In this document: positions 368 through 48,025 of the stretch, one piece after another
How the letters are laid out: each line of letters starts with the position of its first letter
Position numbering within the stretch: the stretch's first letter is position 1
Sequence record: PP601403.1
Direction: 5' to 3' (one strand)
Length of the DNA stretch: 64,000 nucleotides
The notes under the pieces: model-generated
Database searches by the model: none
What the model was told of the DNA's origin: nothing
Seen by the model: only the letters and a program-made list of their open reading frames with translations
Position numbers and translations under genes: made by a program

Positions 368-1714
368 ATGGGTTTAAACAGCCAAATAGAAGGTTTCTTA
401 AAACAAGCCGGTATTGTTGAAAAGAGATCTGATAAACTAATCGATAGTACTAGAATTAAAGCTGTAGTGATAACACCTAAAGCACAGTTTAAAGCATTGG
501 GTGTAACACACTTTACAGAAGTAGCGGATTTCATTTATAACCGGGCAGAAGTGGTAGCTATTAAACTAAGACTTCAGCCAAGTATTTATTTCGATCACGT
601 TGTTCCTTATCGTGATGATCTAATTATTCAAGTTATTATGGATTCAGAATCAGATATGGTGATACGAGAGTTTGTAGCTTCCCCTATGGGAGATAAAGAC
701 TTTCGAGCTCAAGGTAATAACTCTCAACAAGCTAACTTAGATGCTTTTGATGAAACCAATATGGTTGAATATGAGTTTCAGTTAATTGATAAGGGTTATA
801 ACGTCCTTAAGAATATTCCTGTATCTGAAAACTTTATGATGTGTAAACCAGGTGATGTACTTCCTCTGGTAATGGAGACATATAGTAAACAAGCTAAAAT
901 GCCAAGTGGGGTAAAATACAAAGGTCTGTATTTACACCAACCCATCGATAATCAGAATAACTATAGACAAATACTTATTCCCCAAGGTACAAGGTTAATT
1001 GATGTACCAAGTTATTTACAAGCTCATGACGAGTACGGGATTTACTCTAAGGGGTTGGGTAGTTTCTATAAGCAGGGTTATTGGTGGATCTATCCGCTCT
1101 TTAATACAGAACTTGCTGATAAACATTATCGCCCTATCGACATTATCCGTGTCCCTCAGGATAAAATACCCACTCTTGATATGACGTTTGTTAAAACTGC
1201 TGATGCATTAACTATTATCTCTACTGGTTATTCTGAACACAGTGATAACGCTGATGTGAGGAAACAAAACAGTGGTGTAGGTAAGCGTATAGTAATGGCG
1301 GATGCTATTGCTGGTGATACTGGTTATCATTATACCAAAGGTAGAGCTGTTACTACTAGAGCAGATTCTCTCCAAGAGTATAAACTATCAGATAGACGTA
1401 ATGGTCAAGAGTACATCCCACTTGATCTGAATCCCACTAGTAACGTTTCTCTCCCTATGAGTGAGAACGCTATGAACGAAGGTGAGTTCATTGAAGTAGA
1501 ATGGCACAACGGCGATGTAGGGTATTTGGAACCAGGACATCCTGTTAAATACCAGTACATGGGTGAAGGTAACGATATGGTAGTAAGAAAAGGATCTTTG
1601 TTAGGTTATCGACAAGATCATCTTCCTATTACCAGTGGATTAGAACCAGATATGAAACGTGTCTGTAAATTACTTCTATTCCTCAAACGCCAAGAAAAGT
1701 ATAAAGCAACATAG
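368..1714 (+). CDS. Putative virion structural protein (possibly baseplate hub-like)
   Basis: 448-aa ORF with genome-typical codon usage in a virion-gene neighbourhood. Function is inferred from context only. Confidence 0.45.
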   Translation: MGLNSQIEGFLKQAGIVEKRSDKLIDSTRIKAVVITPKAQFKALGVTHFTEVADFIYNRAEVVAIKLRLQPSIYFDHVVPYRDDLIIQVIMDSESDMVIREFVASPMGDKDFRAQGNNSQQANLDAFDETNMVEYEFQLIDKGYNVLKNIPVSENFMMCKPGDVLPLVMETYSKQAKMPSGVKYKGLYLHQPIDNQNNYRQILIPQGTRLIDVPSYLQAHDEYGIYSKGLGSFYKQGYWWIYPLFNTELADKHYRPIDIIRVPQDKIPTLDMTFVKTADALTIISTGYSEHSDNADVRKQNSGVGKRIVMADAIAGDTGYHYTKGRAVTTRADSLQEYKLSDRRNGQEYIPLDLNPTSNVSLPMSENAMNEGEFIEVEWHNGDVGYLEPGHPVKYQYMGEGNDMVVRKGSLLGYRQDHLPITSGLEPDMKRVCKLLLFLKRQEKYKAT

Positions 1715-1733
1715 CTAAAGGGTAATAAAATAA

Positions 1734-1985
1734 ATGAATGTTAATATTGATAACCTTGAACATGTGTTTGATACATTGAATGGGTTTGAATCTCTCTCTA
1801 ATGGAGATCTTACTTCTCCAGATTCTATTTATGCCAAGACGGTATTGAAACTCAACGGTGTAGATTTTAAAGGCAGAGAAGGTTCTGAGAGTTTTGTCTC
1901 TTCTGTTAAAGCAGGTGCTCAAAAAGTTTATGAAATGATTAAGAACTTTATAAAAGCTATTAGAGATTTCTTCTTTGGTAGTAAA
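1734..1985 (+). repeat. Left arm of a 252-bp inverted repeat (partner 14355..14606)
   Basis: Manual alignment shows exact blocks of 67 nt (1828..1894 vs 14446..14512), 32 nt and 33 nt; similarity ends abruptly after FFFGSK. Confidence 0.95.
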
Positions 1986-2657
1986 ACAAAAGTTTCCAAT
2001 GACATCAAAATTACTGAAAATAACACAAAGGAATTGGACACACTAATATTTGGAATCCCGAAGAGTGAATACGATGTATTTAAAGCCAAAGTTTCTGAAA
2101 TTAAATTTGAAGGCGAACCTTTGTTTAATATCGGGATGGAATTGGACACGTATGTTACTGGTTTAAATGGCTGGGAAGGTGGAGTAGAAAAGCGAGGGTT
2201 TACAGGTCCAACATTATCAGTTGCAAAACTATTAAATGTTCCTAATATAGATTTTCACCACGTTACCAAAGTGGGGTTATTAGGTAAAGAAGTCACAAAC
2301 ACCCTGTCAAAAATAGAAGCTAACACTTTCTTTACTATGAATGTCGAAGCTCTAACTAAAATTAAATCAGATATTAAGAAAATCTTACCAGCTAGTGCAA
2401 AGTTTAACGAAGAAGGTACCAAAACTCTTGAACACTGGACTAAGTTTCTGGAAAAATGTAATGAGGATTGTAAGGGTAGAACGGTTTCTAATGAAGAATG
2501 GAAACGTGAATTTAATGTTAGGTACGATATACTTACTTCCATAACCGTCAGTAAAGAACTAATCAGGGAATTAAAACACTGTCTTGATTATAACGCTAAA
2601 CTCGTTGAAAAAATGAAAAACATGACTGGTAGGTGGAAAAAATATTTAGAACAATAA
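1734..2657 (+). CDS. Internal head protein paralogue A (phiKZ-type internal protein family; conserved 84-aa leader plus variable C-terminus)
   Basis: First 84 aa nearly identical to 13653..14606; carries GFES and GSES, which fit the S/A/G-x-E prohead-protease motif of phiKZ-like head proteins. Confidence 0.65.
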   Translation: MNVNIDNLEHVFDTLNGFESLSNGDLTSPDSIYAKTVLKLNGVDFKGREGSESFVSSVKAGAQKVYEMIKNFIKAIRDFFFGSKTKVSNDIKITENNTKELDTLIFGIPKSEYDVFKAKVSEIKFEGEPLFNIGMELDTYVTGLNGWEGGVEKRGFTGPTLSVAKLLNVPNIDFHHVTKVGLLGKEVTNTLSKIEANTFFTMNVEALTKIKSDIKKILPASAKFNEEGTKTLEHWTKFLEKCNEDCKGRTVSNEEWKREFNVRYDILTSITVSKELIRELKHCLDYNAKLVEKMKNMTGRWKKYLEQ

Positions 2658-2667
2658 TAAACATATT

Positions 2668-2699
2668 GCTAACTCTAGACCTCGAGGTCTAGAGTTAGC
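2668..2699. terminator. Perfect 32-nt palindrome, probable bidirectional terminator
   Basis: GCTAACTCTAGACCTCGAGGTCTAGAGTTAGC is its own reverse complement and lies between convergent genes. Confidence 0.8.
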
Positions 2700-2709
2700 T
2701 TATTATGAA

Positions 2710-3024
2710 TTAATTAGTACTAATACCAAAACTTCGATGACATACTACTTGATGTGTGTACGCATAACCACAAACAACACTAACAAGTCTAACACCACAC
2801 TTGTCGTGAAAATTATATTGTAGTTTATTTTCGCTGTCGTCTTTTAATACCAAATTAGTATCAGAGAACTTACTGTTAGTAACGAGAACTTTGGCATTTA
2901 TATTTGAAATATAACCACCGCTATCGATATCACAACCATTGATAACTACATTGGAAGATTTATCCATCATCGTGTTCAAATCTTCAGTGTTAATGCGTTC
3001 TTCATTAACCATTAAACTAATCAT
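2710..3024 (-). CDS. Hypothetical protein
   Basis: 104 aa; AAGGA RBS upstream; directly downstream of the helicase gene. Confidence 0.7.
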   Translation of the reverse strand: MISLMVNEERINTEDLNTMMDKSSNVVINGCDIDSGGYISNINAKVLVTNSKFSDTNLVLKDDSENKLQYNFHDKCGVRLVSVVCGYAYTHQVVCHRSFGISTN

Positions 3025-3057
3025 GTTTATTTCCTTTTACTCGGTCAGTAAAGTTAA

Positions 3058-4596
3058 TTAACCCATGTCATCAAAATCAGAACCACCGCCCATAGCTTCA
3101 CTGCGATGAGAGAGTGACTTTCTGAAAGTCTTCTTATCAAAGTTTATATCGTGAACTAACCCGTTTAGAGGGTCTAGTGGATAGATACCAAATCTAGCTG
3201 ATTCAGCAGCACCTTCACCACGCATCTTACCTACATAGTAAGTAAAGTAACATTCATCATTACTCATCTTAGCAACATGGAACGTAATCTCTACATCTAC
3301 CTCGTTGGTCAGCTTGGTAGAACCCTCAGTCATTGATTTACCACCAATGTCTCTTGCAAAGTAAATTTCAGAATCATCATCAGATTCACGAATAAACTTT
3401 TTAGCATCAGGGTTTAATTGATGAGGAGTAAAGAATGCAGCACCACGTGAACTAAAGAAGTTTCGAGCACGACGATACAAGTCTTGAAGTCTATCGGAAC
3501 GAGATTCGCCTTGACAACCAGTAAGATCAGCCATAGCCAAGTAATCATAAGCACCTACGATGATTTCATGACCACGAATTTCCAAGTTACGAACACGTTG
3601 CATAATTTCTGTGATGTTATCGTGACTTGGGTTTACGCGAAAGAACTGGAAATCCCAACCATTATCTTTAAACCCGCTGATGATAGTTTCTACAACTGTA
3701 TCAGTAGTTGCTTCAAAGAAGTTTGGTTTAACACCTGTTTTAGCAGTAACAAAAAGCTCGTACATACGTTTGAAAATCAAACCAAGAGAATCCTCAGCAG
3801 ACATTAAACAAACAGTAGGAATACGACTCTTATCACGCAATACAGGTTTATTATAAAGTGGAACAGATGCCAAGATATGAGCTAGACCAAATGACTTACC
3901 ACGGTTAGTCAGTGCGTTGATCATGTAGAACAATCCACGACGAATACCTAAGTCTGGATAAAGTGCTTCATTCAAACCAGCTAAACCAGTTTTCATGATA
4001 CCTTCAGCAGAAGTCTCTACTTTCAATAGATCGATTACAGCTGCGATTGACTTTGGATCATTACTACTGGATTTCTCGACAACTGCTTTATCAAAGTTAT
4101 TATCGGTATCTGAAATCTTAGCGGAGATAAGTTCGTTAATTTTAATCCAATCTTCTCTTGTTAGATCTTCTTCACCATCAAACAAGAATGGGCGAACCAT
4201 GGACTTAAATTCATAACCAAATTTATTCTTAACATCATTATCACGAAGTTCTTTGATAATCTCAAAAATAAGTTTACGACTATCTTCTTCGTTATATTGA
4301 TCGTTAAATGTATTATTAAGAAGTTTCTCTAAAGTAGGATCAAGAATAACAATTTCACCAACTTTACTGACTGACAAAGATGTTATGATGTTGGAATCAA
4401 CAGGTTGTTCCCTTATCCAAACTAAAAGTTTACGTAAGAGCGCTTCTACTCGTTTATCTTGTTGAACAAGACTTTCCTTACTTTTAGGAACCGATTCAGC
4501 CAACAAACTCAATTCATCCATCATGTCTGTATCGTGCAACCGCCAAGCTTGAAACATTGCTGTTGCTATTTTGACAAGACGAATTAGGTTATTCAT
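3058..4596 (-). CDS. dnaB: DnaB-like replicative helicase (phiKZ gp118-like)
   Basis: Walker A ALTNRGKS, SAED, DYL and HQLN motifs; position next to the capsid gene matches phiKZ-like synteny. Confidence 0.9.
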   Translation of the reverse strand: MNNLIRLVKIATAMFQAWRLHDTDMMDELSLLAESVPKSKESLVQQDKRVEALLRKLLVWIREQPVDSNIITSLSVSKVGEIVILDPTLEKLLNNTFNDQYNEEDSRKLIFEIIKELRDNDVKNKFGYEFKSMVRPFLFDGEEDLTREDWIKINELISAKISDTDNNFDKAVVEKSSSNDPKSIAAVIDLLKVETSAEGIMKTGLAGLNEALYPDLGIRRGLFYMINALTNRGKSFGLAHILASVPLYNKPVLRDKSRIPTVCLMSAEDSLGLIFKRMYELFVTAKTGVKPNFFEATTDTVVETIISGFKDNGWDFQFFRVNPSHDNITEIMQRVRNLEIRGHEIIVGAYDYLAMADLTGCQGESRSDRLQDLYRRARNFFSSRGAAFFTPHQLNPDAKKFIRESDDDSEIYFARDIGGKSMTEGSTKLTNEVDVEITFHVAKMSNDECYFTYYVGKMRGEGAAESARFGIYPLDPLNGLVHDINFDKKTFRKSLSHRSEAMGGGSDFDDMG

Positions 4597-4634
4597 GCGT
4601 AACTCCTTGGTGAAAATTCTGTTAGGTAACTAAT

Positions 4635-5186
4635 ATGCAAGTTAAATTGGGATTGAAAGAGACCAACGTCTATTTCCTAAGGGAACAAGACCTTGATCTT
4701 TTGAATGCAAACAAGCTTCGACTTGTTGATCTACCTTATCTGCCTAAATTTGATAATGTGGTTGACAGTGACTGCTTGGACTGGTTGGAATACCAACGAG
4801 CAGTGGAAAAGCAATACTGTGGTTTTAAGAATACAACTTATACACCTCTTGGTGATATTAAAAATGTTGAGTTTAACCGGACAGGTACGGTCTATAAAAC
4901 AAAGTATCAAGATGTTCTAAATTCCGACAAGAAGGTTAAAACAGGAAAGCATTTTTACTTCCACACAGCTGGTGGTCAGGTATTCATCCTCAATAGTAAT
5001 AATATTGTGAAGAACGCCTTGTTCACTGAAGTGCCGGGAGATCTGTCTACTGCTGTTTATCGTTCCCTGCTAAATGCAGTGGGTTCTGTAGAGTTTTATT
5101 TCCGAGACTCTAAGGACTTATTCAAAACGTGCGAAGAACGTGGTTTCGTTGATCCTGGTTTTATTCTGTCCAAAGTAGTTGCGTAA
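4635..5186 (+). CDS. Conserved protein upstream of the capsid gene, probable minor head protein
   Basis: 183 aa between DnaB and MCP, as in phiKZ-like phages (synteny only). Confidence 0.55.
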   Translation: MQVKLGLKETNVYFLREQDLDLLNANKLRLVDLPYLPKFDNVVDSDCLDWLEYQRAVEKQYCGFKNTTYTPLGDIKNVEFNRTGTVYKTKYQDVLNSDKKVKTGKHFYFHTAGGQVFILNSNNIVKNALFTEVPGDLSTAVYRSLLNAVGSVEFYFRDSKDLFKTCEERGFVDPGFILSKVVA

Positions 5187-5228
5187 TGCTTTGTGATTAA
5201 TAAGGATAGTTATACGTTTAATGAATGT

Positions 5229-5232
5229 TATG
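5229..5232 (+). promoter_or_regulatory. Candidate late promoter core (TATG) for the capsid gene
   Basis: TATG in the AT-rich intergenic region about 80 nt upstream of the MCP start. TATG is the known phiKZ late-promoter core, but it is short, so the call is weak. Confidence 0.4.
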
Positions 5233-5312
5233 CGTAAAACTCACTCCTGTTGCGCAAACAAATATATTTGTTTTCGATATCGACATGTCTTTTTAAATGG
5301 GAATTTCTCTTT

Positions 5313-7484
5313 ATGACTATCCAATTTTCCGTGAAGGGTGCTGGCAACAAAGGCGCTCACCTGAAGAACGTAATGGCTAACCTGCAAGCTGTACAATTCA
5401 AAGAAGGTAACGTCTGGGCTGGTATTACCGGTAACGAATCTCTGAACGCTGTTGAAACCACCATCAATGCCGGTATCGGTTTTAACCAGAAGAATGCTCT
5501 GGCTTCCGCTATTGGTTCTTTTGCTGATCAAAGCTTTGCTGATCGTGCTGCTAAATTTGCTGACATGGTTAAAGTCGGTGGTATGGAATCTTTCTCTGCT
5601 TCTATGGAAGCTGGTAAGATCAACCGTCACAAAGCCGCTACTCTGGAACTGAACGCTCGTGGTAACCGTCAATGGGATGCTGCTGAAGAACTGTTCAAAA
5701 CTGTTACCATCGGCTATGCTGACGAAAACCTGCAACTGCCGATCGACGTAGCTGGTGTTGGTGCTTATAACGTTTCTGGTAACGTAAACGAATCTTTCGA
5801 AGATCTGCGCCCGATTGCTTCTGTTCTGGCTGATGACAAGTTCTCCTCAGGTGATGACCTGAAACTGGTTCCGGTTTATCCTTCCGATGCAAGCAACCCC
5901 AATCGCGCAGCTTTCGTTGCTGAAGCCGACTGGACTCCTTGGGACGAAGCTTATGAAGCCAATGACCTGCTGGGTCGTGAAGCTCACAAGACCAACTATC
6001 TGGCAATCCGCAAAGCTAACAACCTGATGAGTCTGTGTCAAGCTCCTGGTGCTCCGCGTTTTGAACAGAACGATGAAATCGAATCTGGTTCCATCCGTCT
6101 GAACAGCTTCCTGCTGAAGATCAAAACCAAAGATGGTGAGGGTTTTGCTACCCTGGACACTTCTACCATGTCCTCCACCGCTATGCGTCCTGGTACCGGT
6201 CTGACCTCTGATGAGAAGCGTCAAATCGCTTTCGTTATCAACGGTATGGACGTCGCCAACCTGAAGACCAAAGCTGGTGCGCCGACCCAACTGTTCAAAA
6301 CCCTGACTGATGCCGGTCTGCAAGTCTTTGTACAGTTCGAGTACTCTGCTACCTATCAGCGCTCTACCCGTGCTCTGTCCCCGACTGTATCTCCTGTTAC
6401 CATTGCTTATGTAATGAAGAACGGTGAGAAGCTGGTTCCGGGTACCGCTGGTATGCCTGCTGATATTCAAGCTCTGATCACTGCTCAGGTTGTAGAAGCT
6501 TCTGTTCACGGTGTTGTTCTGAAAATGAACCACAACAACGTTAACCAGAGCCGCTACGGTACCACCGTTGTGTTCGCTAACACCATCAAGAACTACGGTG
6601 TTCGTCGTCGTAACCCGATCTCTGTTAAGTATCCGATGCAAGGTGATGACACCAACGCTGACGTACTGGCTCAGCTGATCAAGCAGATGGATGTACTGGT
6701 TACTCGTGAAATGTCCCATGACGCATTCCGTGCAGCCCATGGTCACTTTGCATACCTGTATGACAACAACGGCCAGCAGATGGTTAACATCAACGATGAT
6801 AGCTCCTCTGTTCTGCCGGGTCAGCACTTCCTGAACACCACCGCTGTACACAGCAAGTTCAAGCTGCTGGAGCAAGTGTCTACTCTGGATTCCAAAGACG
6901 CTCTGGAGAACATCCGCGCTGTCCTGGTTAACAAGATCTATGACATCATCACCGCTCTGCGTGTGAACTCCAACGTAGCTGCTTTGAAAGAGCTGGATGG
7001 TCGTGCTGAAGAGTATCGCGTAATCGCTCACTCCTCCATGGCTCCGTTCCTGATGAACGCAGGTGACTACCGTACCTTTGGTAACAACGTCAAGTTTGAA
7101 GTTGTTGAAACCAACATCAACTCTGAGAAGGGTCTACTGTGGGTTGTACCGAAGTCCAACACTAAAGATGACGAAATCGACATCTACGGTGGTATGGGTA
7201 TCTGTGTGACCAAGGAACTGCTGGTTATCGAAGGTGCTGTAACCCAAGCTGATCGTCAGTACCGTATGCTGATCACCCAGCCTGCTTATCAGCACCACGC
7301 TCTGAGTTGTGTTGCTGGCCTGGCCGAGATCGAAGACATTGCTCAGCTGCTGAGTGACGAAGGTCTGATCAGTGCTGTCAACAAGCACATGGTACAAGTC
7401 AGTGGTTCCACCAATCCTGCCGGTGTCCAGAAGGTAGAAGTAACTAACTTCCCGGCTGGGGCTGGTACTGTAACTGTACCGTAA
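5313..7484 (+). CDS. Major capsid protein (phiKZ gp120-like), 723 aa from MTIQFSVKG
   Basis: Size, synteny, very strong highly-expressed codon bias (CTG, GCT, AAC, ATC), propeptide sites GNES/GMES/SME, and a strong downstream hairpin. The upstream 21 codons of the ORF call lack the bias. Confidence 0.9.
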   Translation: MTIQFSVKGAGNKGAHLKNVMANLQAVQFKEGNVWAGITGNESLNAVETTINAGIGFNQKNALASAIGSFADQSFADRAAKFADMVKVGGMESFSASMEAGKINRHKAATLELNARGNRQWDAAEELFKTVTIGYADENLQLPIDVAGVGAYNVSGNVNESFEDLRPIASVLADDKFSSGDDLKLVPVYPSDASNPNRAAFVAEADWTPWDEAYEANDLLGREAHKTNYLAIRKANNLMSLCQAPGAPRFEQNDEIESGSIRLNSFLLKIKTKDGEGFATLDTSTMSSTAMRPGTGLTSDEKRQIAFVINGMDVANLKTKAGAPTQLFKTLTDAGLQVFVQFEYSATYQRSTRALSPTVSPVTIAYVMKNGEKLVPGTAGMPADIQALITAQVVEASVHGVVLKMNHNNVNQSRYGTTVVFANTIKNYGVRRRNPISVKYPMQGDDTNADVLAQLIKQMDVLVTREMSHDAFRAAHGHFAYLYDNNGQQMVNINDDSSSVLPGQHFLNTTAVHSKFKLLEQVSTLDSKDALENIRAVLVNKIYDIITALRVNSNVAALKELDGRAEEYRVIAHSSMAPFLMNAGDYRTFGNNVKFEVVETNINSEKGLLWVVPKSNTKDDEIDIYGGMGICVTKELLVIEGAVTQADRQYRMLITQPAYQHHALSCVAGLAEIEDIAQLLSDEGLISAVNKHMVQVSGSTNPAGVQKVEVTNFPAGAGTVTVP

Positions 7485-7524
7485 TAACTACGTAATGTAG
7501 TTAAGTTGTTAATACGCTAACTAA

Positions 7525-7557
7525 AACTCCTACTCTCCCAAAAGGAGAGTAGGAGTT
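7525..7557. terminator. Stem-loop terminator after MCP
   Basis: AACTCCTACTCTCC-CAAAA-GGAGAGTAGGAGTT, 14-bp stem. Confidence 0.85.
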
Positions 7558-7579
7558 ATGTTTTGTCCTCTATTTTCTT

Positions 7580-7612
7580 TGTTCTATATTTTTTCAGATA
7601 GATATTATTAAG
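7580..7612 (+). promoter_or_regulatory. Early-type (virion RNAP) promoter
   Basis: TGTTCTATATTTTTTCAGATAGATATTATTAAG, identical over 33 nt to 48051..48083; resembles the phiKZ early AT-rich/TATATTAC motif and precedes the operon containing the nvRNAP subunit. Confidence 0.75.
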
Positions 7613-7664
7613 TTGTAATGTCAGGGAGGTTTATTTCTGATGTATTAATAGTAGAGAAAATAAG

Positions 7665-8693
7665 ATGAACAATTCACGAGTACATAAAAACTCTGAATTT
7701 GGATTTCGTTCTCTTATTGAGAACAATACTTTCGAAGATCTTTATCTAATTCACCGATCTGGCGTGAAGACCATTCTTCCAGCTAAGACCAGTGAAACGT
7801 TGAATAGAGATCCTTTCATGGTTAATCAATTGATTATCTATGGGGAAGTAGGAGTACCCGATTGTGTATTAACAGATGTGATTGACACCAAAACTGGTGA
7901 AAGTCCTTTTCTGTTGGAACAACTGGGTAAACATCTATCCGAATTCAAACAAGAACATCCTTATTGCCAACATTGGGCAACACCTTGGGATCGTGCTTTC
8001 CATACCTGTCACGATATTAACAAGAACTATTTTGTTAGTGAATCACTGGGAGTATTGGTTTGTAAAGTTCCAGAGTTAGATAACGTTTTAGCTAAATCGG
8101 GATTTCTTCCCATGTACGCACTTCATAAAGAGATGCCAGAACCTAAGTTAGGTGACGACATGTCTATTGAGGACCGTAACTTTAGCAATAGTGATATTCT
8201 TCACGCAACAGCTGTAGTAATTGACAAGCGTAATAAAATGGGTACTCTCTGGACTACTGTGTTCGGACAGACTTACGAATTACCAGTCATCACCAACTCC
8301 CAATTGGAAGATGGTGTATATTTGAAATCAGGTAGCACTGGCAACGGTCCTTTTGAGTTTATTGCTTATAGCTCTACTGATTTTGATAAGCTGATTCGTG
8401 AACGCAATATCCATCGTAAACGTGACGATGCAATCTTTGATCCGAGTAATAAAGAACTGGCAGCTAAGTTAACTGAACTCAGTAAACTAAAAGCTGAACA
8501 TAAGAAAGTAAAACTCGAATTACAAGAGTTGATAATTGAGCACAAGAAAGTCAAGGAGAAACATAAAGACGAGTTTGATACTTTAAAAGGTAACAGGCTC
8601 AATAATACTATACTGGATTGGTTTAGAGCAATCATGGGTCCGTTTGGAGGGGATATCAAACGTCTCATAGGTGGATTATTTACGTTTGCTTAG
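7665..8693 (+). CDS. Conserved hypothetical protein with C-terminal coiled coil and amphipathic tail
   Basis: 342 aa; heptad-like LAAKLTELSKLKAEHKKVKLELQEL; ends LDWFRAIMGPFGGDIKRLIGGLF. Confidence 0.7.
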   Translation: MNNSRVHKNSEFGFRSLIENNTFEDLYLIHRSGVKTILPAKTSETLNRDPFMVNQLIIYGEVGVPDCVLTDVIDTKTGESPFLLEQLGKHLSEFKQEHPYCQHWATPWDRAFHTCHDINKNYFVSESLGVLVCKVPELDNVLAKSGFLPMYALHKEMPEPKLGDDMSIEDRNFSNSDILHATAVVIDKRNKMGTLWTTVFGQTYELPVITNSQLEDGVYLKSGSTGNGPFEFIAYSSTDFDKLIRERNIHRKRDDAIFDPSNKELAAKLTELSKLKAEHKKVKLELQELIIEHKKVKEKHKDEFDTLKGNRLNNTILDWFRAIMGPFGGDIKRLIGGLFTFA

Positions 8694-8751
8694 TTGATAA
8701 ACTAACTAGTAATGGATATAACAAGCACGACTAACATACAAAGGAGAAGCA

Positions 8752-10452
8752 ATGGATCCGCAGTTGCTAAGAAAGATCTCCAAGACCAGAGAACCGTTTA
8801 CACCGGAACTGGTTGAAGGGTGGCACGAAAAAGATTTGAACAAGAGTGTCACGTATCTTGAAAACTGTTTTAGAAATATGTTTAGATCGTTAGAAGAAAA
8901 AGGATATGTTTTCGACGGGATCGAAAAAGTTCCTCCTCTGGAGTTTTATAACGCAATCACCAAACCAGGTAACGGAACGAGTTCCGGAACAAAAGAGTTT
9001 GAAATTGCTAAGAACTCTTTTTATGGTGTGCGCGTAAAACATCACTTCAAAGACCCTGTAACAGGTGTATGTCAAGAACTCAAAGAACCTTTGATGTTCC
9101 TACCTTACACTAATCGACATGGAGATATTTATACTCGTAACTCACTGTATGGTTTACAGTACGTGTTATCAGAACGAGGTCCTTCTGTAGATGGGGGTAA
9201 AGATAAAACTATCTTTATTCGTGTAACGGGATACAAGTTCAAAGTAACCAAGGAATTACATACCTTTAACAGGGTATATAAAGCAGGTGAGAATACAATC
9301 ACCAATGCAATGAATATGACACTTCCCGCAAACCGCTTTTATCAAGCGCGTAAAGATCGTCGTATTACCAACACTAAGATTCCTATTCCTTTGTTGAGTT
9401 GGTATCTGTTTGGTAAATATGGTTTCTCTCACTGTATGGAAGAGTACGGTGAATGCGAGTATCGACTAGATACTGTTGACACTTTGCTTGAACATTATAA
9501 AGAGAAAGATGGTTGGGAGATTTATAGTAATACAGGTGCAATTCACCCAAAGGCTTTTGATAGACCAGTTGGTATGCCTTTGATGGACGATCCTGCAATT
9601 GCTATTCGTAGTAAAAATAAAGACGGACAGGTTAGTAACCTAGCACTGCAATATACTGCTGGACTGCTATACATGTTCGGAGTATTCAACCATGATCTTG
9701 ATATTACCAAATTGGATGATATCAATTATTGGCGTTTAATCATTGGTCGCTGTTCTATTAAGTTAGCGCTGCGTACTGAAGATGATATTTATCTGAAACA
9801 GATGAACGAACATTTCCTGTCTGTTGAAGAGTACGCTGATGATCTTACCATTGACAAGTACAACAAGTTCGATATTGAAGTAAAGAACACGTACGACTTG
9901 CTCAATTATCTCATGTTGAATTACTCAAACCTGATTAAGTTGTATGATCCAGCTGACATGCTCCACAAGGAACTCTCCTCTATGGAATTCCTAATGGATT
10001 ACATGATCAACCAAGCTAACAACTTTAAGTTCCAAATCAGGAATAAAGCAGTTATCATTCCAAAGATCATTAATCGCGAAATTGATACGTTCTTCCGTCT
10101 GTTTAACATAGACAAGAGTGTTCGTGATAATAATGTCTGCTTGGAACAAACCGGAACGGATAATCCGTTTATCGATTATGGATTGGGTGTGATTCTTCAA
10201 ACCAAGGCTAATGTTGGAAAAGGTCCTGGTAGAAAGAAAGAAGACTTCGATCCCAATCATCCGGGATCCAAGATTCATGCGTCACAACCCTTTGTCTGTA
10301 GTTATCAATTTACAACTAAACCGAATCCAGATGGACGAGGGCTACTACAACCACGAGTAAGATTGGTTGCTGGTAGATTCGTAGCACTCCATCCGGAGGA
10401 TCGACAGTTGTATGAAGCAACGAATCATCGCCTCAAGTTTAGAGAGCGCTAA
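8752..10452 (+). CDS. Non-virion RNA polymerase beta subunit, N-terminal half (phiKZ gp123-like)
   Basis: RpoB-like segments (PYTNRHGDIY...LYGLQYVLSERG; HASQPFVCSYQFTTKPNPDGRGLL); size and synteny after MCP. Confidence 0.8.
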   Translation: MDPQLLRKISKTREPFTPELVEGWHEKDLNKSVTYLENCFRNMFRSLEEKGYVFDGIEKVPPLEFYNAITKPGNGTSSGTKEFEIAKNSFYGVRVKHHFKDPVTGVCQELKEPLMFLPYTNRHGDIYTRNSLYGLQYVLSERGPSVDGGKDKTIFIRVTGYKFKVTKELHTFNRVYKAGENTITNAMNMTLPANRFYQARKDRRITNTKIPIPLLSWYLFGKYGFSHCMEEYGECEYRLDTVDTLLEHYKEKDGWEIYSNTGAIHPKAFDRPVGMPLMDDPAIAIRSKNKDGQVSNLALQYTAGLLYMFGVFNHDLDITKLDDINYWRLIIGRCSIKLALRTEDDIYLKQMNEHFLSVEEYADDLTIDKYNKFDIEVKNTYDLLNYLMLNYSNLIKLYDPADMLHKELSSMEFLMDYMINQANNFKFQIRNKAVIIPKIINREIDTFFRLFNIDKSVRDNNVCLEQTGTDNPFIDYGLGVILQTKANVGKGPGRKKEDFDPNHPGSKIHASQPFVCSYQFTTKPNPDGRGLLQPRVRLVAGRFVALHPEDRQLYEATNHRLKFRER

Positions 10453-10471
10453 CGCATAAGGTGGTATTATA

Positions 10472-12883
10472 ATGAACGGCGGAACACTTCTAGGTCGTAA
10501 CACCCAGATGTTTAACAACAATAACAGTAACCAACCGCAAGGTAATCTGCAACAACCCCAAGGTAATATGAACCAAGGTAACCAGTTACTTGGTCAATTG
10601 ATCCAGTTGTCAAAGGGTGGTGCTAACCTTAATCAACAAGGTGGTGGTTCTAGTAGTCTGTATAACTTTAATAATGGTAGTGATCCGTCTTTTAACCAAT
10701 TCCTTGATCTTAGCGATGCTCAAAGTAATGAAATCCTTAAGGGACAATCATTAGCTGAAGCAAGTCAACTTGCTGGTGTGGTTTTGCAACATGGATTTAG
10801 GCGTATTCAAGGTCCGTATTACAATGCCATTCGTCAAGGTATGGAACTATTCCGTAGATTGGATCGCAACTCTCCACATTTGGTTGATGATACGAGTGAG
10901 CTGTTTTATAACCAGATCATGAGTAACAACAACTTGTACAATCATATTGTCGCTAATAGCTGTTTGCAGCTTTCTGCTTTGGCCGCTATGCGACTAATGA
11001 ATGGTGAGAACATTCGCGGGAACGCTAATGTAATTACTGAAATGATTGTAGATGCCGTTGGTGCAACCTGTGGTCTCCAGCTGCTGGATTGGATTTGTAA
11101 GAATCCTAATGGTTCTACCATCTTCCATAACTCCAGTCAGAACTTTAAAGCACTCCTTCGTCGTGTAGAAGGTTGCTGGGATAGTATCAAAGCTCGATAC
11201 GATTTCATCCCTGGTTCTGTAATTCCCTGGGAACGTGGACAGTTGACAGCTACCATGCGTAAAAATGATCTTCCCAATTACTTGCTTGATGCAAGAATGG
11301 GATTTAACTTTGAAGGTTTGATCGGTAACAGTTATCAAGCTGTGCAAGATCTTACTCCTTCCCACCATACTGTTAAAGATCATAATCAGGGTATTGACCC
11401 GGCTGGTTATCAATTGATGATGGACTACTTCAATCGCACCAAGTGTTCTGTTGAAGACGGCACATACCCAACTGCCCCTAGTAAGGAAGAACGAGTTCAG
11501 CAACGTCAAGATTATCATAACGTTAATGATTTTGACCGCGAAGTTAAATCCACCAAGTACTTTACTATGGATACTCGTTTTGATTATCACTTTGACGATT
11601 ACTTCGTTCAGATTGGTGATACTGGTTGGTACGTTGCTGAGAACCAGGTCATGATCGATATCATGTCCAAGTTCACCAACGTTAACACTGGTAAGAAATT
11701 TGTTAAATCTGAAGTGTTCTATCTTAACCTTGAATGGGTTTCACTGTGTCGTTTTGATGTAGCTAACGGAACTGCTGAAATCAAATTCTTACGTATCCCA
11801 GGAGAAGATGCATTGAGATTCGCTCTTACAGACCCGAATCGTGTTCTTCCATTTATGTGGGAACACAATGGAGAAGTTGTTTCCTCGTTTGTTGCTAATC
11901 CGGCAGAAACCAATGACTTTGTTCGTGATAATAAAGTTATTAGTCTGGGTGAAATGCAACCTCTGGAGAAAGAACCGAACATCCTGTCTTCCAGTAATGT
12001 AGTTAAAGTAAACTCTGAAAGTGAAGCTTTTGCTAAGGTAGATGCTTCTCTGAAGACTTTTGACAAGCAAAATCATCTTGATGCATTCATTATGGCAACT
12101 GAACTGAATGCACCATTTACATTTGAAGAAGGAGTTGAATCAAAGAAATTCTACGAGATGTTTAACACCTTGGTTATTGGAGAGGAATTGGATTACTCTA
12201 ATAGCTATGACATGTTCAAATCTCTGGAACGTAAAGTTAAGCAGTTTGGTTCTGCTATGTTTGAACAGTTCCTACGTACTCAACTTACCAACTTGGTTAA
12301 TCGTTGGTTGAATGAGTGCCGTGGGTTCCCTGCTGAAAACGATGGTGTAAACTTCTTTGTTAAACTTGATGATCTGTTTGATGATCTGGATGCTTTCTGT
12401 GAACTGCTGAAGAATAAGGATCATGAGTCACTTCGTGCTTTCCTAAATCTAGCCGATAATGAATTCCTAAAGAGTAATTTGCAATTTATCAAACCAGCAA
12501 AGGAAACTGAAGAAGAACTGTTTAAGAATGTAGATAAAGATGATCCGGTAGCCGTAGCCGTAGCTACTAATGAGTTTGCTCAGTCGGTCGTACTCAAACG
12601 TCAAGTTATGATCACACAACTGAGAAAAGAGATCGGTCCTGTAAGTAACGATAAAGTAACTTTGATGGAATCACTTTCACCAGCAGTATTTGCTATTGTA
12701 AAAGAAGCACGTAAACGTTCAGAGTTGTTGTTTGGACGTCAAGTTCCTGTGTTGCTGGAATTTGAAACTCCAAGTGGTAATCACACTCGTTCTGCTACGT
12801 ACTGTGATTTTGATCAATCTGTTATGAACATCTCGGCACTGAAAGGTCTGGGTGAACTTATCTTACTTCGTACTGTAGATTAA
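10472..12883 (+). CDS. Large conserved hypothetical protein with an N/Q/G-rich N-terminus
   Basis: 803 aa; AAGGTGG RBS; low-complexity first 80 aa or so. Confidence 0.75.
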   Translation: MNGGTLLGRNTQMFNNNNSNQPQGNLQQPQGNMNQGNQLLGQLIQLSKGGANLNQQGGGSSSLYNFNNGSDPSFNQFLDLSDAQSNEILKGQSLAEASQLAGVVLQHGFRRIQGPYYNAIRQGMELFRRLDRNSPHLVDDTSELFYNQIMSNNNLYNHIVANSCLQLSALAAMRLMNGENIRGNANVITEMIVDAVGATCGLQLLDWICKNPNGSTIFHNSSQNFKALLRRVEGCWDSIKARYDFIPGSVIPWERGQLTATMRKNDLPNYLLDARMGFNFEGLIGNSYQAVQDLTPSHHTVKDHNQGIDPAGYQLMMDYFNRTKCSVEDGTYPTAPSKEERVQQRQDYHNVNDFDREVKSTKYFTMDTRFDYHFDDYFVQIGDTGWYVAENQVMIDIMSKFTNVNTGKKFVKSEVFYLNLEWVSLCRFDVANGTAEIKFLRIPGEDALRFALTDPNRVLPFMWEHNGEVVSSFVANPAETNDFVRDNKVISLGEMQPLEKEPNILSSSNVVKVNSESEAFAKVDASLKTFDKQNHLDAFIMATELNAPFTFEEGVESKKFYEMFNTLVIGEELDYSNSYDMFKSLERKVKQFGSAMFEQFLRTQLTNLVNRWLNECRGFPAENDGVNFFVKLDDLFDDLDAFCELLKNKDHESLRAFLNLADNEFLKSNLQFIKPAKETEEELFKNVDKDDPVAVAVATNEFAQSVVLKRQVMITQLRKEIGPVSNDKVTLMESLSPAVFAIVKEARKRSELLFGRQVPVLLEFETPSGNHTRSATYCDFDQSVMNISALKGLGELILLRTVD

Positions 12884-12909
12884 AGAGTTATTCGCGAATA
12901 AATCTAAAG

Positions 12910-12937
12910 CCTATACCTGGATCACTCCAGGTATAGG
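12910..12937. terminator. Stem-loop terminator
   Basis: CCTATACCTGGA-TCAC-TCCAGGTATAGG. Confidence 0.8.
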
Positions 12938-13072
12938 TCTATTTCATCGTGTAATTCTTTTTAAGCAATTGTTTATGTTAATCCAACAGAATGTATGGGA
13001 TACTTGTTACTATTGATTAGAAAGCGTTATATGAGCTTTGGTGTTATTTTAAGATCCAAGAAATCTCAGACC

Positions 13073-13080
13073 TATATTAC
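13073..13080 (+). promoter_or_regulatory. Early promoter core TATATTAC
   Basis: Exact match to the phiKZ early-promoter core, in an intergenic region upstream of 13153. Confidence 0.6.
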
Positions 13081-13129
13081 TATAGTGTATAAACATGACA
13101 AGTGTTTATCATATTCAGATATTTTCCAC

Positions 13130-13146
13130 AAGTCTAGATAAGGAAT
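13130..13146 (+). promoter_or_regulatory. Recurrent pre-RBS element AAGTCTAGATAAGGAAT, copy 1
   Basis: 17-nt identity with 38154..38170; variants at 52219 and 54359. Confidence 0.6.
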
Positions 13147-13152
13147 GTAATT

Positions 13153-13602
13153 ATGCCTATTATTAACACTTCTGCACTGAATCTGAACTCCGACATGTCC
13201 GCTCCAGCGCCTACCGTATCTACCAACACTGATAATCTCAGTCCGAACAAATGGATCGTTGCTGGCGTAGCTATCTCCGCTGCTCTGGCTGTTAACCTGA
13301 CCGAACAGGTTAAAGAAGATCGTTTTGATCTGGTGTCAAACGTTGCAACTGTAAGCGCTGCTGTGCTGGCTGGTGGTGTATCGTACAAGCTAGCCAAAGA
13401 CGTTGAAGGCGTACCTACTTCACTAGTGGCCACCATGGGTGGTTCCTTGGGGATCCTGTCATCAGTAGTTGTAGCGCCTGCTGTTAACGTTCTGGGTAAC
13501 AAGGTTAAAGATCACTTCTCTACCAAGGTAGAAGAACAACCTGTTATGATCGTTGATAACGATGCACTACAGGAATACCTGGAACAGAAAGAAGTTGCAT
13601 AA
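13153..13602 (+). CDS. Putative early membrane-associated protein
   Basis: 149 aa; three small-residue-rich hydrophobic segments; highly-expressed codon bias; has its own promoter and terminator. Confidence 0.7.
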   Translation: MPIINTSALNLNSDMSAPAPTVSTNTDNLSPNKWIVAGVAISAALAVNLTEQVKEDRFDLVSNVATVSAAVLAGGVSYKLAKDVEGVPTSLVATMGGSLGILSSVVVAPAVNVLGNKVKDHFSTKVEEQPVMIVDNDALQEYLEQKEVA

Positions 13603-13608
13603 TAAGTT

Positions 13609-13640
13609 TTCCTACCTACCCTTAATTGGGTAGGTAGGAA
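13609..13640. terminator. Bidirectional stem-loop terminator
   Basis: TTCCTACCTACCC-TTAATT-GGGTAGGTAGGAA between convergent genes. Confidence 0.85.
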
Positions 13641-13652
13641 CTTAAGATTTTT

Positions 13653-14606
13653 TTATTCTTTATTGTCTTCAACAATCTTTTTAAGTTTACTAATTCCAGA
13701 TTCAATTTGTAAAATTTGGTTATCACAATGTTTAATCAAAGAGGTATTATTATTAGAAGCTTGAACCATGTGTTTACACAGTTTTTCAATTTCTTTTCCA
13801 CGTTTGATAAAGACTTCTTCTTTATCATTCAAATACTTCTTCGCTATTTCATTGTTATACTCAAGATCTTTGGTAACTTCAGCAAGACCTTGGGTTGCGA
13901 CGTTCCGCATTTCTTGATAAAGCCCTTGGAGAGTTACTAGCGGAGCAATAGTTTTAAAAGAACTTATGAAGGTTGCAGGGGTCTTAATATCGTTAAAAAC
14001 TCTATGCTCGGATGCCACCTTATTAATCTTTTCATAAATTTCTTTAATCTCTTTAAACTTAAAACCTGAATCTGAAACTTTAGGACCAGGGACGTTCTCA
14101 ACATCAAACCATTTTAATAAAGCCTCATGCTGACCAGCTGTGTATGTGTCTTTAAACTTATAGTAATGATCAAAAGCAAGTGCAACCTCTTTGTTTTCCA
14201 TGAGGTTTGTAATGCGCTCCATTTGTTTTTCAATCCTCTCCTTTGCTTCTTGAGTAAGTCCTGTAATTTCCACTGGTTTTATATTAGTTAAAAAAGTTAA
14301 CTGACTCTTAGTACTTTTAACTGCATCATCAATAGTTTTAGTTTGTTTAGATCCTTTACTACCAAAGAAGAAATCTCTAATAGCTTTCAAGAAGTTCTTA
14401 ATCATTTCATAAACTTTTTGAGCGCCAGCTTTCACAGAACCCATGAAACTCTCAGAACCTTCTCTGCCTTTAAAATCTACACCGTTGAGTTTCAATACCG
14501 TCTTGGCATAAACAGAATCTGGAGAAGTAAAATCTCCATTAGAAAGAGATTCAAAACCAGTTAAAGTACTTAATACATGTTCAAGATTATCAATATTAAC
14601 ATTCAT
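13653..14606 (-). CDS. Internal head protein paralogue B
   Basis: Shares the 84-aa leader with 1734..2657; no recognisable similarity in the C-terminal 233 aa. Confidence 0.65.
   Translation of the reverse strand: MNVNIDNLEHVLSTLTGFESLSNGDFTSPDSVYAKTVLKLNGVDFKGREGSESFMGSVKAGAQKVYEMIKNFLKAIRDFFFGSKGSKQTKTIDDAVKSTKSQLTFLTNIKPVEITGLTQEAKERIEKQMERITNLMENKEVALAFDHYYKFKDTYTAGQHEALLKWFDVENVPGPKVSDSGFKFKEIKEIYEKINKVASEHRVFNDIKTPATFISSFKTIAPLVTLQGLYQEMRNVATQGLAEVTKDLEYNNEIAKKYLNDKEEVFIKRGKEIEKLCKHMVQASNNNTSLIKHCDNQILQIESGISKLKKIVEDNKE
14355..14606 (-). repeat. Right arm of the 252-bp inverted repeat (partner 1734..1985)
   Basis: Its reverse complement aligns with 1734..1985; similarity extends about 25 nt into the RBS region. 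Confidence 0.95.
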
Positions 14607-14648
14607 TTAATTTATTCCCTTTTAGTTAAATACAAAGCATTTATAAAG

Positions 14649-14679
14649 TTATACACCTACCTTCTTGATAGGTGTATAA
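14649..14679. terminator. Stem-loop between the portal gene and paralogue B
   Basis: TTATACACCTA-9 nt-TAGGTGTATAA. Confidence 0.6.
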
Positions 14680-14692
14680 AGATTAGTTATTT

Positions 14693-21715: not shown

Positions 21716-22288
21716 ATGACTATAAAAATACTCGGGATTGACCCAGGAACTAATAGCTTAGGGTGTGCAGCTCTTGAGTTAGATGTTTATAACAAGAAAT
21801 CATTTAAACTAATTTATGCTGATACTATTCTAGGTCAGAATAATGAGTTTGGTGTTCAGAATGATAATCCTCATCAGGTAAGAGCTAAAGGACTTACAAG
21901 AGTCTATTCTCACATCTTTGATATGATTGATCCTAATGTAGTAGCTTGCGAAGATAACTTCTTAGGAATCAATCCTGCTTCGTTTAAACGCCTTATCGAA
22001 GTAGTCTCGTACTTTAATATCCACACTGTGATGAATAAATCTGATTGTCCATTTAAACTAGTACTCCCAAGACTTGCTAAACAAATTGTTAAAGCAGACT
22101 TTAAAGGTAGCACTAAGGATGATGTAACAATTGGATTAAAGAACTGTCCTTTTTTAGATTTAAATGGATTTGACTTAGATCAACTTACTGAACACGCTAA
22201 CGATGCAATTCTTCTGGCCCTTTATATTGCAGTGCAATACTACAAAGATTTAGGGTGGGATATTGTAAATGACAGTAAACAACAATAA
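21716..22288 (+). CDS. ruvC: RuvC-like Holliday junction resolvase
   Basis: ILGIDPGT, VACED and HANDAILLA give the RuvC acidic catalytic residues. Confidence 0.9.
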   Translation: MTIKILGIDPGTNSLGCAALELDVYNKKSFKLIYADTILGQNNEFGVQNDNPHQVRAKGLTRVYSHIFDMIDPNVVACEDNFLGINPASFKRLIEVVSYFNIHTVMNKSDCPFKLVLPRLAKQIVKADFKGSTKDDVTIGLKNCPFLDLNGFDLDQLTEHANDAILLALYIAVQYYKDLGWDIVNDSKQQ

Positions 22289-47993: not shown

Positions 47994-48025
47994 ATCCCAC
48001 CTAACCAATCACGGTTAGGTGGGAT
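47994..48025. terminator. Stem-loop
   Basis: ATCCCACCTAACC-AATCAC-GGTTAGGTGGGAT in a divergent intergenic region. Confidence 0.6.

Follow-up and report, generated by a model that had tools for sequence, protein, structure and literature searches.

The heads of phiKZ and SPN3US contain abundant inner-body or ejection proteins which are paralogues of the family PF12699 (PMC5694885; PMC10052503; bioRxiv 10.1101/2024.03.24.586471), and many of these phiKZ-type internal head proteins are injected into the host together with the DNA (bioRxiv 10.1101/2024.03.24.586471). The paralogues (phiKZ gp92-95, 97, 162 and 163; SPN3US gp53 and gp54) vary in copy number from 2 to 7 between phages (PMC5694885). 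In phiKZ and SPN3US their N-termini are common to the paralogues and are cut at S/A/G-x-E by a prohead protease of the S80 type (PMC5694885; PMC10052503). Here we deal with two genes of Aeromonas phage ACP1 (PP601403.1; 236 kb; genus Ferozepurvirus), a phiKZ-like jumbo phage. The stretch that was analysed, called the window in the following, is the last 64 kb (64,000 nucleotides, nt) of the ACP1 record, to which it is 100% identical. In it the genes A (ACP1_0181) and B (ACP1_0190) point towards each other across a block of 12.4 kb and begin with nearly the same 84 codons. Codons 1-84 appear to be the constant module of a protein family, the N-module, on which each gene carries a variable body.

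Like the internal head proteins of phiKZ and SPN3US the A/B family consists of multi-copy paralogues of variable copy number in phiKZ-like jumbo phages, and the likeness extends to a G-x-E motif, an S80 protease gene, a helical build and recurrent weak matches to PF12699. The genes differ from the phiKZ inner-body operon in being single and scattered over several sites; their candidate propeptide has about 52 amino acids (aa) compared to about 125 aa in SPN3US gp53 and gp54. Another group of packaged proteins is the T4 internal proteins (IPI, IPII, IPIII and polymorphic relatives), which PMC3012670, with reference to Repoila et al. 1994, describes as having a capsid targeting sequence (CTS) that is conserved, and diverse bodies, as encoded in plastic regions, and as being thought to be injected counter-defence cargo. 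The A/B family is similar to them in having a constant N-terminal, putative targeting and cleavage module on highly diverse bodies. There is no sequence relationship between the two, and the T4 CTS is about 10-20 aa long while the module here is 84 aa; none of the matches from the family, PDB and fold searches with the A/B family was a T4-type internal protein. A third system of interest is the PeSL-type shuffling, in which near-identical phages differ by indels and replacements whose borders are repeated promoter-like leaders and stem-loop terminators (PMC2839356). The units of that system are further marked by strong sigma-70-type early promoters and by encapsidated mini-circles.

A different comparison was made in a preliminary description of the window, which proposed that the block between A and B could be an invertible segment. 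In the Mu G and P1 C segments (Gin/Cin) a single constant part with a single promoter serves two alternative 3' parts that have no promoter; the crossover sites are short, and there is a serine invertase dedicated to the segment. The ACP1 locus is like them in that the genes point inward, with the constant 5' parts on the outside and the variable 3' parts on the inside of an inverted repeat. It differs from them in that both genes are complete and the repeat is coding and 274 nt long; an invertase domain was not found, and only one orientation was seen in the relatives. Our conclusion is that A and B very probably belong to a multi-copy family of probable packaged head proteins which come and go and whose N-module was recently patched by gene conversion, and that nothing points to the 12.4 kb being a flip switch. 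The repeat is a by-product: two members of the family flank a deeply conserved core block and are oriented oppositely to each other.

The inverted repeat and gene conversion

The repeat search gave two arms of 274 nt which are 90% complementary, with 27 mismatches, at a spacing of 12,369 nt (Table 1). The second-best inverted repeat within the first 20 kb has only 32 nt and 72%. It had been noted in the preliminary description that A and B have in common their first 252 nt, a 67-nt exact block and part of the ribosome binding site (RBS). This was borne out: the repeat reaches 22 nt upstream of both ATGs, the RBS region included, and the longest exact run between the arms is 67 nt. Each of the two genes is a complete open reading frame (ORF) with its own ATG, RBS region and N-module. 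The proteins are 90% identical over aa 1-84, and BLASTP gives no alignment between them beyond that point.

The similarity is not the same along the module. In nt 94-162 of the genes A and B are 97-100% identical, within as well as between ACP1 and the related phage AVP1, and here A or B is 70-80% identical to every other member of the family (71% to the A-orthologue L017, 75% to the B-orthologues). The synonymous divergence (dS) between A and B is 0.07 in this segment compared to 0.37-0.38 in the flanks (nt 1-93 and 163-252). In nt 1-93 B of ACP1 is 97% identical to B of phage pAEv1810 and 88% identical to A of ACP1. The 67-nt exact block and the high nucleotide identity thus come from a short ectopic gene-conversion tract, and the remainder of the module is kept similar by purifying selection on the protein. 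This agrees with plain gene conversion, the fallback reading of the preliminary description. The case for conversion comes mainly from this segment-wise incongruence with the orthologues. A run-length permutation test gave P=0.004 for A and B, and 0.0002 and 0.0007 for two other pairs; the latter suggests further conversions, for example from D to B in pAEv1810 (D is introduced below). The protein motif of the tract is typical of B-type and atypical of A-type orthologues, and the likely direction is therefore from B to A, an event which would have taken place in the common ancestor of ACP1 and AVP1, to judge from the sequences.

The two arms are, at 90% overall, the closest relatives of each other, and this is what one would expect from a simple recent duplication in which the whole N-module passed from B to A, or from A to B, when A came into being, and later received mutations with no conversion involved. 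We find this very unlikely. The divergence is heterogeneous, with a dS in nt 94-162 far below that on both sides; in L017 the gene in the corresponding position, an A-type orthologue, carries a different module of its own, which means that the A-type gene is old; and the first 93 nt of B are closer to B of pAEv1810 than to A. As a model for the 67-nt block the simple duplication was rejected on the dS pattern.

The silent sites of the 67-nt block could also have been kept by an RNA or DNA signal (a regulatory structure, a target of a small RNA or a protein-binding site) and not by exchange. A 6-bp hairpin is indeed found just upstream of the block in both copies (1802-1820 and 14520-14538). 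The folding of the leader of A is unremarkable (z 0.38), and nt 94-162 is synonymously saturated among the other members and between orthologues (dS above 1.5 or undefined). Because the tract is saturated between other members there is no silent-site constraint in it, and the signal is an extremely unlikely explanation; this model too was rejected on the dS pattern.

Gain, loss and replacement of family members

The 84-aa module was found by tblastn in 2-8 places per genome in 36 jumbo-phage records, and one of the matches is a gene of phage OBP which is annotated as an internal head protein. A hidden Markov model (HMM) of the module, run on the whole ACP1 record, found A, B, D (ACP1_0079), E (ACP1_0039) and four weaker members. 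E adjoins a helicase, as does the OBP gene.

The close relatives of ACP1 are AVP1 (97.6% identity), pAEv1810 (94.9%) and PS1/PS2 (92.7%), and among these phages, which are 93-98% identical, the occupancy of four sites varies. Site A, after g448, is filled in ACP1 and AVP1 and empty in pAEv1810 and PS1, where a 55-nt gap with the same hairpin is found. Site B, after the portal gene, is filled in ACP1, AVP1 and pAEv1810 and empty in PS1. Site C, which is situated about 27 kb upstream, is filled in pAEv1810 and PS1. It is empty in ACP1, where the hairpin and the distal leader remain and the gene is cleanly missing, beginning where the shared leader starts and ending with the stop codon. Site D, the position of ACP1_0079, is filled in ACP1 and pAEv1810 and was not found in PS1/PS2 or AVP1. 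The paralogue copy number thus varies among related phages, both in the number of places per genome and at sites A-D.

Replacement is seen at site B. Between ACP1 and pAEv1810 the flanks are 90-100% identical in nucleotide sequence, the module 92-94% except for a central window of 79%, and the body 53-72%. The difference in the body is an allele replacement.

The B, C and D genes have a common leader of about 45 nt. A retains only the last 22 nt, which abut the stop codon of g448, and the same is true for the A-type orthologue in the Logan contig L017. A and D are followed by near-identical hairpins, B and C by related ones. Several statements in the preliminary description concerned these boundaries. 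The hairpins it placed at 2668 and 13609 are present, with a free energy of about -26 kcal/mol and z-scores of -8.6 and -6.1. B does lie behind a hairpin, with no TATG in the gap, and for A, which was said to follow its upstream gene by 19 nt with no hairpin between, the gap of 19 nt is correct.

Near-identical intergenic hairpins with the stem core CCTACCTA[A/C]CC are found at no fewer than 8 ACP1 loci, several of which are beside variable genes. A 20-nt promoter-like motif with TATG is present at four loci, all on the minus strand (ACP1 record 19707, 76578, 117182 and 144174; L019, L006, L004). One copy lies in the leader that precedes the D-site gene and another at the empty site C, with no gene in front of it there now.

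The similarity to the PeSL-type shuffling is that hairpins are already there where sites A, B and C are empty, that the hairpin family is found at at least 8 loci and the promoter-like motif at 4, and that the junctions at these three sites coincide with such earlier hairpins and with the point where the shared leader begins. A difference is that the elements here do not seem to be sigma-70 early promoters, as sigma-70-like sites show no enrichment (44 found, 46.7 expected), and that the genes beside them are probable late structural genes.

The genes behave as cassettes composed of a leader, the N-module, a variable body and a terminator hairpin, and these cassettes have been gained, lost or replaced at several intergenic sites beside pre-existing hairpins. 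The dispersed hairpins may be both terminators and recombination hot spots. We tentatively propose, and would not put it higher than a reasonable possibility, that the leader and N-module on one side and the dispersed terminator hairpins on the other are recombination handles which make the probable injected-protein genes exchangeable cassettes.

Orientation of the enclosed block

The orientation was compared in 7 close records, in the ENA contigs L014, L016 and L018, and in 5 distant jumbo phages (OBP, pEt-SU and three others). The distant OBP-like phages were found with the major capsid protein (MCP) as a query in IMG/VR; their MCP is 57-65% identical, and both A and B are absent from them. 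In all these genomes and contigs the gene order g448(+), DnaB(-), MCP(+), gp123-like(+) ... portal(-) is identical, and the order and orientation of the core block are kept as far as OBP and pEt-SU. All 10 B-type contexts outside ACP1 (AVP1, pAEv1810 and the ENA/Logan contigs L014-L016, L018 and L021-L025) follow the portal gene, and 7 of them also reach the 149-aa gene that follows B; the A-type contexts, 3 of 3, follow g448. No inverted arrangement or recombinant junction was found in ACP1, AVP1, pAEv1810, PS1/PS2, the ENA/Logan contigs or the 5 distant phages. Block orientation among relatives, which the preliminary description had named as a way of recognizing an inversion, is therefore single in every genome and contig, the distant phages with neither A nor B included. 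Among the public sequencing runs none was evidently of an isolate; those that match the region are metagenomes, which contain no more than 0.54 of the words.

The AVP1 record has been permuted, with its start 19 nt ahead of gene A and its end at the g448 orthologue's stop codon (L003 1-20, L026 703-2049). This break at the repeat boundary is chosen or assembly-driven and gives no evidence of rearrangement.

Pfam scans of the block genes and 44 other coding sequences of the window found no resolvase, invertase or integrase domain, in agreement with the earlier remark that the window has no invertase, and no invertase or integrase annotation is present anywhere in the ACP1 record. Only ACP1 and AVP1 have both A and B. 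With site A empty in pAEv1810 and PS1 and site B empty in PS1 the inverted geometry is lineage-specific, and we take it to be recent and incidental. D, E and B are on the same strand in ACP1, and A alone is inverted relative to them.

It has to be considered that homologous recombination between the arms inverts the 12.4-kb block at some frequency, exchanging the C-terminal bodies between the positions after the baseplate gene and after the portal gene and so changing which of the two is made in larger amount. A phage proficient in recombination could plausibly use as substrate a 274-nt repeat whose 67-nt core is perfect; genes for a RuvC-like resolvase and an SbcC-like protein are present in the window; the A and B copies have interacted in the past, as can be seen from the conversion tract; and strong hairpins bound the enclosed genes. 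Against this stand the absence of an inverted or recombinant arrangement in any genome or contig examined, the limitation of the geometry to the ACP1/AVP1 clade, and the presence of the other family copies on one strand, so that the inverted pairing is no design feature of the family. Because A and B are both complete genes an inversion would give two near-identical full-length proteins and no on/off switching. They both trail virion structural genes, since the upstream genes are a baseplate spoke homologue and the portal gene, and the payload swap between a well and a poorly expressed locus, as suggested in the preliminary description, is not upheld. Its reading of the block as a segment like Mu G and P1 C is not supported either, on the same grounds: complete genes, no invertase in the window, a lineage-specific geometry, one orientation in all genomes and contigs examined, and B-type and A-type genes that always follow the portal gene and g448, respectively. 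We regard the model of an inversion by homologous recombination as unlikely. With no inverted form, no invertase and two complete genes, inversion does not appear to be a part of how the locus works. The paralogue family at this locus is an ordinary one, in which conversion is ectopic and turnover cassette-like.

The protein family and its probable function

The family seems to be one of all-helical proteins remotely related to the phiKZ internal head or ejection proteins (PF12699). In a set of 1.84 billion proteins its profile matched 283 representative clusters (E<=1e-3), in most cases over nearly the full length, and PF12699 is the sole recurring Pfam match among the relatives (7/24 and 12/49 members). 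Scans of IMG/VR gave distant relatives only, and N-module patterns returned none there. G17, G50 and E52 are invariant or nearly so in the family and form the motifs G17-F-E19 and G50-x-E52.

AlphaFold models, with input alignments whose rows were window proteins and proteins returned by the searches only, are all-helical for both A (predicted local distance difference test, pLDDT, 81.5) and B (pLDDT 72.9) and have the same helix order. In both models G50-x-E52 is in a predicted loop before a long conserved helix. With Foldseek against BFVD the models of A and B have the same best match over the full length, a family member of PS1, and weak matches to virion proteins of 201phi2-1, PhiPA3 and Psa21. 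Against the PDB Foldseek found designed helical bundles only, and when A, B and the family profile were compared with the PDB by sequence, there was either no match or one of a generic helical or apolipoprotein-like kind.

The preliminary description stated that A and B diverge completely after 252 nt. By sequence this is so, as hhalign finds no significant similarity between the A-, B- and D-type C-terminal groups (E 0.04-0.2); by predicted fold it is not, since the order of the helices is the same. A common origin of the A, B and D bodies is suggested by the full-length profile matches and the fold models.

A gene for a Peptidase_S80 prohead protease is present in ACP1. If the proteins are analogous to those of phiKZ and SPN3US, residues 1-52 would be a prohead-targeting propeptide, which would be removed by the S80 protease at the invariant G-x-E52, and the conserved helix (residues 53-84) with the fast-evolving C-terminal body would be left as the packaged protein. 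The constant module may on this analogy be a targeting and cleavage unit and the variable body the packaged cargo. The paper on phage ZPAH34 contains no virion mass spectrometry.

Features and neighbouring genes

The coordinates are collected in Table 1.

Table 1. Features of the A/B locus; positions refer to the window except where the ACP1 record is named.
Feature	Position	Strand	Remarks
g448, gene upstream of A	368..1714	+	homologue of phiKZ gp101 and of the Goslar inner-peripheral baseplate spoke
Inverted-repeat arm 1	1712..1985	+	22 nt of leader/RBS and codons 1-84 of A
Gene A, ACP1_0181	1734..2657	+	307 aa; A-type N-module family member; 19 nt after the g448 gene
Candidate propeptide of A	1734..1889	+	putative; codons 1-52, ending G-S-E52; codons 53-84 are the conserved helix
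67-nt exact block in A	1828..1894	+	gene nt 95-161; core of the conversion tract; encodes the loop with the invariant G50-x-E52
14-bp terminator-like hairpin after A	2668..2699	.	also at the empty site A of pAEv1810 and PS1; near-identical copy after the D-site gene
Enclosed core block	2710..13602	.	104-aa gene, DnaB-like helicase, 183-aa gene, MCP, 342-aa gene, non-virion RNA polymerase (nvRNAP) gp123 homologue, 803-aa gene, 149-aa gene
13-bp hairpin after B	13609..13640	.	dispersed family, at least 8 loci in ACP1; also at the empty site B of PS1
27-nt imperfect direct repeat, left copy	13634..13660	+	brackets the B cassette
Gene B, ACP1_0190	13653..14606	-	317 aa; B-type N-module family member; downstream of the portal gene, behind hairpin and conserved leader
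Inverted-repeat arm 2	14355..14628	-	22 nt of leader/RBS and codons 1-84 of B
67-nt exact block, B copy	14446..14512	-	mirror of the A block
Candidate propeptide of B	14451..14606	-	putative; codons 1-52, ending G-S-E52
Conserved leader of B-, C- and D-site genes	14607..14642	-	its start is the boundary of the gene-sized gap at the empty site C of ACP1
13-bp hairpin between portal stop and B leader	14649..14679	-	no TATG in the gap
27-nt imperfect direct repeat, right copy	14674..14700	+	brackets the B cassette
Portal protein gene, upstream of B	14693..17620	-	homologue of phiKZ gp129 and of the Goslar portal; same strand as B
Dispersed hairpin family	window 13611-13638, 47996-48023; ACP1 record 10477, 38228, 137052, 144126, 148866, 168959		

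The enclosed genes had been named as DnaB, MCP and the nvRNAP beta subunit, and they were recovered as a divergent DnaB (PF20307), a phiKZ-type MCP (PF25620) and a homologue of gp123 of phiKZ, which is a subunit of a non-virion RNA polymerase. The mechanical ORF of the MCP (5250-7484) starts at a TTG at 5250; the record and the relatives annotate an ATG at 5313, and the Pfam match to the MCP begins at residue 79 of the long ORF. The 149-aa gene beside B (13153-13602) is hypervariable, with 60-95% aa identity among contigs whose portal is 72-97% identical; in the contigs in which it is only 60% identical the portal is 97% identical. As this gene is itself hypervariable, the whole interval from the portal gene to g803 is a plastic island.

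An annotated RuvC-like resolvase (21716-22288), an SbcC/SMC-like protein (34322-36805) and an NAD-dependent DNA ligase (39830-41767) are encoded in the window. Together they form a general set of recombination and repair proteins, which could help repeats to undergo homologous exchange. Outside the window an intein splicing domain is noted in the record for ACP1_0081 (L006 5589-8966), and two HNH endonuclease genes are annotated elsewhere in ACP1 (ACP1_0115 and ACP1_0158).

Discussion

A number of points weigh against our interpretation of the locus. The first is the relationship to PF12699. A scores 17.6 bits (E 0.0023) and B has no match, with a gathering threshold of 27 bits, so that both are below the Pfam threshold; for comparison the OBP relative scores 26.2 bits and a true member, ACP1_0171, 145.6 bits. 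The hhalign comparison of the family profile with ACP1_0171, which spans the invariant G-x-E motif and the following helix, gave E 4.8e-4 over 42 columns around G-x-E-(S/G)-F...FF-G, at a probability of only 32%. The label "head protein" in the preliminary description depends on a possible remote homology to PF12699. The presence of A and B in virions and their cleavage are, moreover, argued by analogy. With regard to the conversion the P-value for A and B becomes about 0.06 when corrected for 15 pairs, which is modest, and the proposed direction is derived from protein-level motifs in few orthologues. The finding that the block is never inverted comes from a small sample in which two genomes have both copies; the orientation is that of assembled genomes and contigs, and rare inversion isomers may be present in a lysate.

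In our judgement A and B are new but ordinary genes for internal-head-type paralogues of a phiKZ-like phage, with a constrained N-module. A phase-variable switch of head cargo at this locus was a tempting lead, and it is removed as a false one. The packaged and injected paralogues of the phiKZ-like phages are acknowledged as an open question, for which we judge the present result to be modestly useful. In the A/B family genes are present or absent at defined sites in phages of 93-98% identity, body alleles are replaced, and the module undergoes short-tract ectopic conversion. This gives a comparative handle on which part is constrained (the putative targeting and cleavage module) and which part is free to diversify (the body).

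If the cassette proposal made above is true, phages of the Ferozepurvirus type could move, replace and partly homogenise cargo genes among at least 4 genomic sites and between co-infecting phages. It would then be a jumbo-phage counterpart of the plasticity known from the T4 internal proteins and from the PeSL elements, possibly driven by the arms races with host defences.

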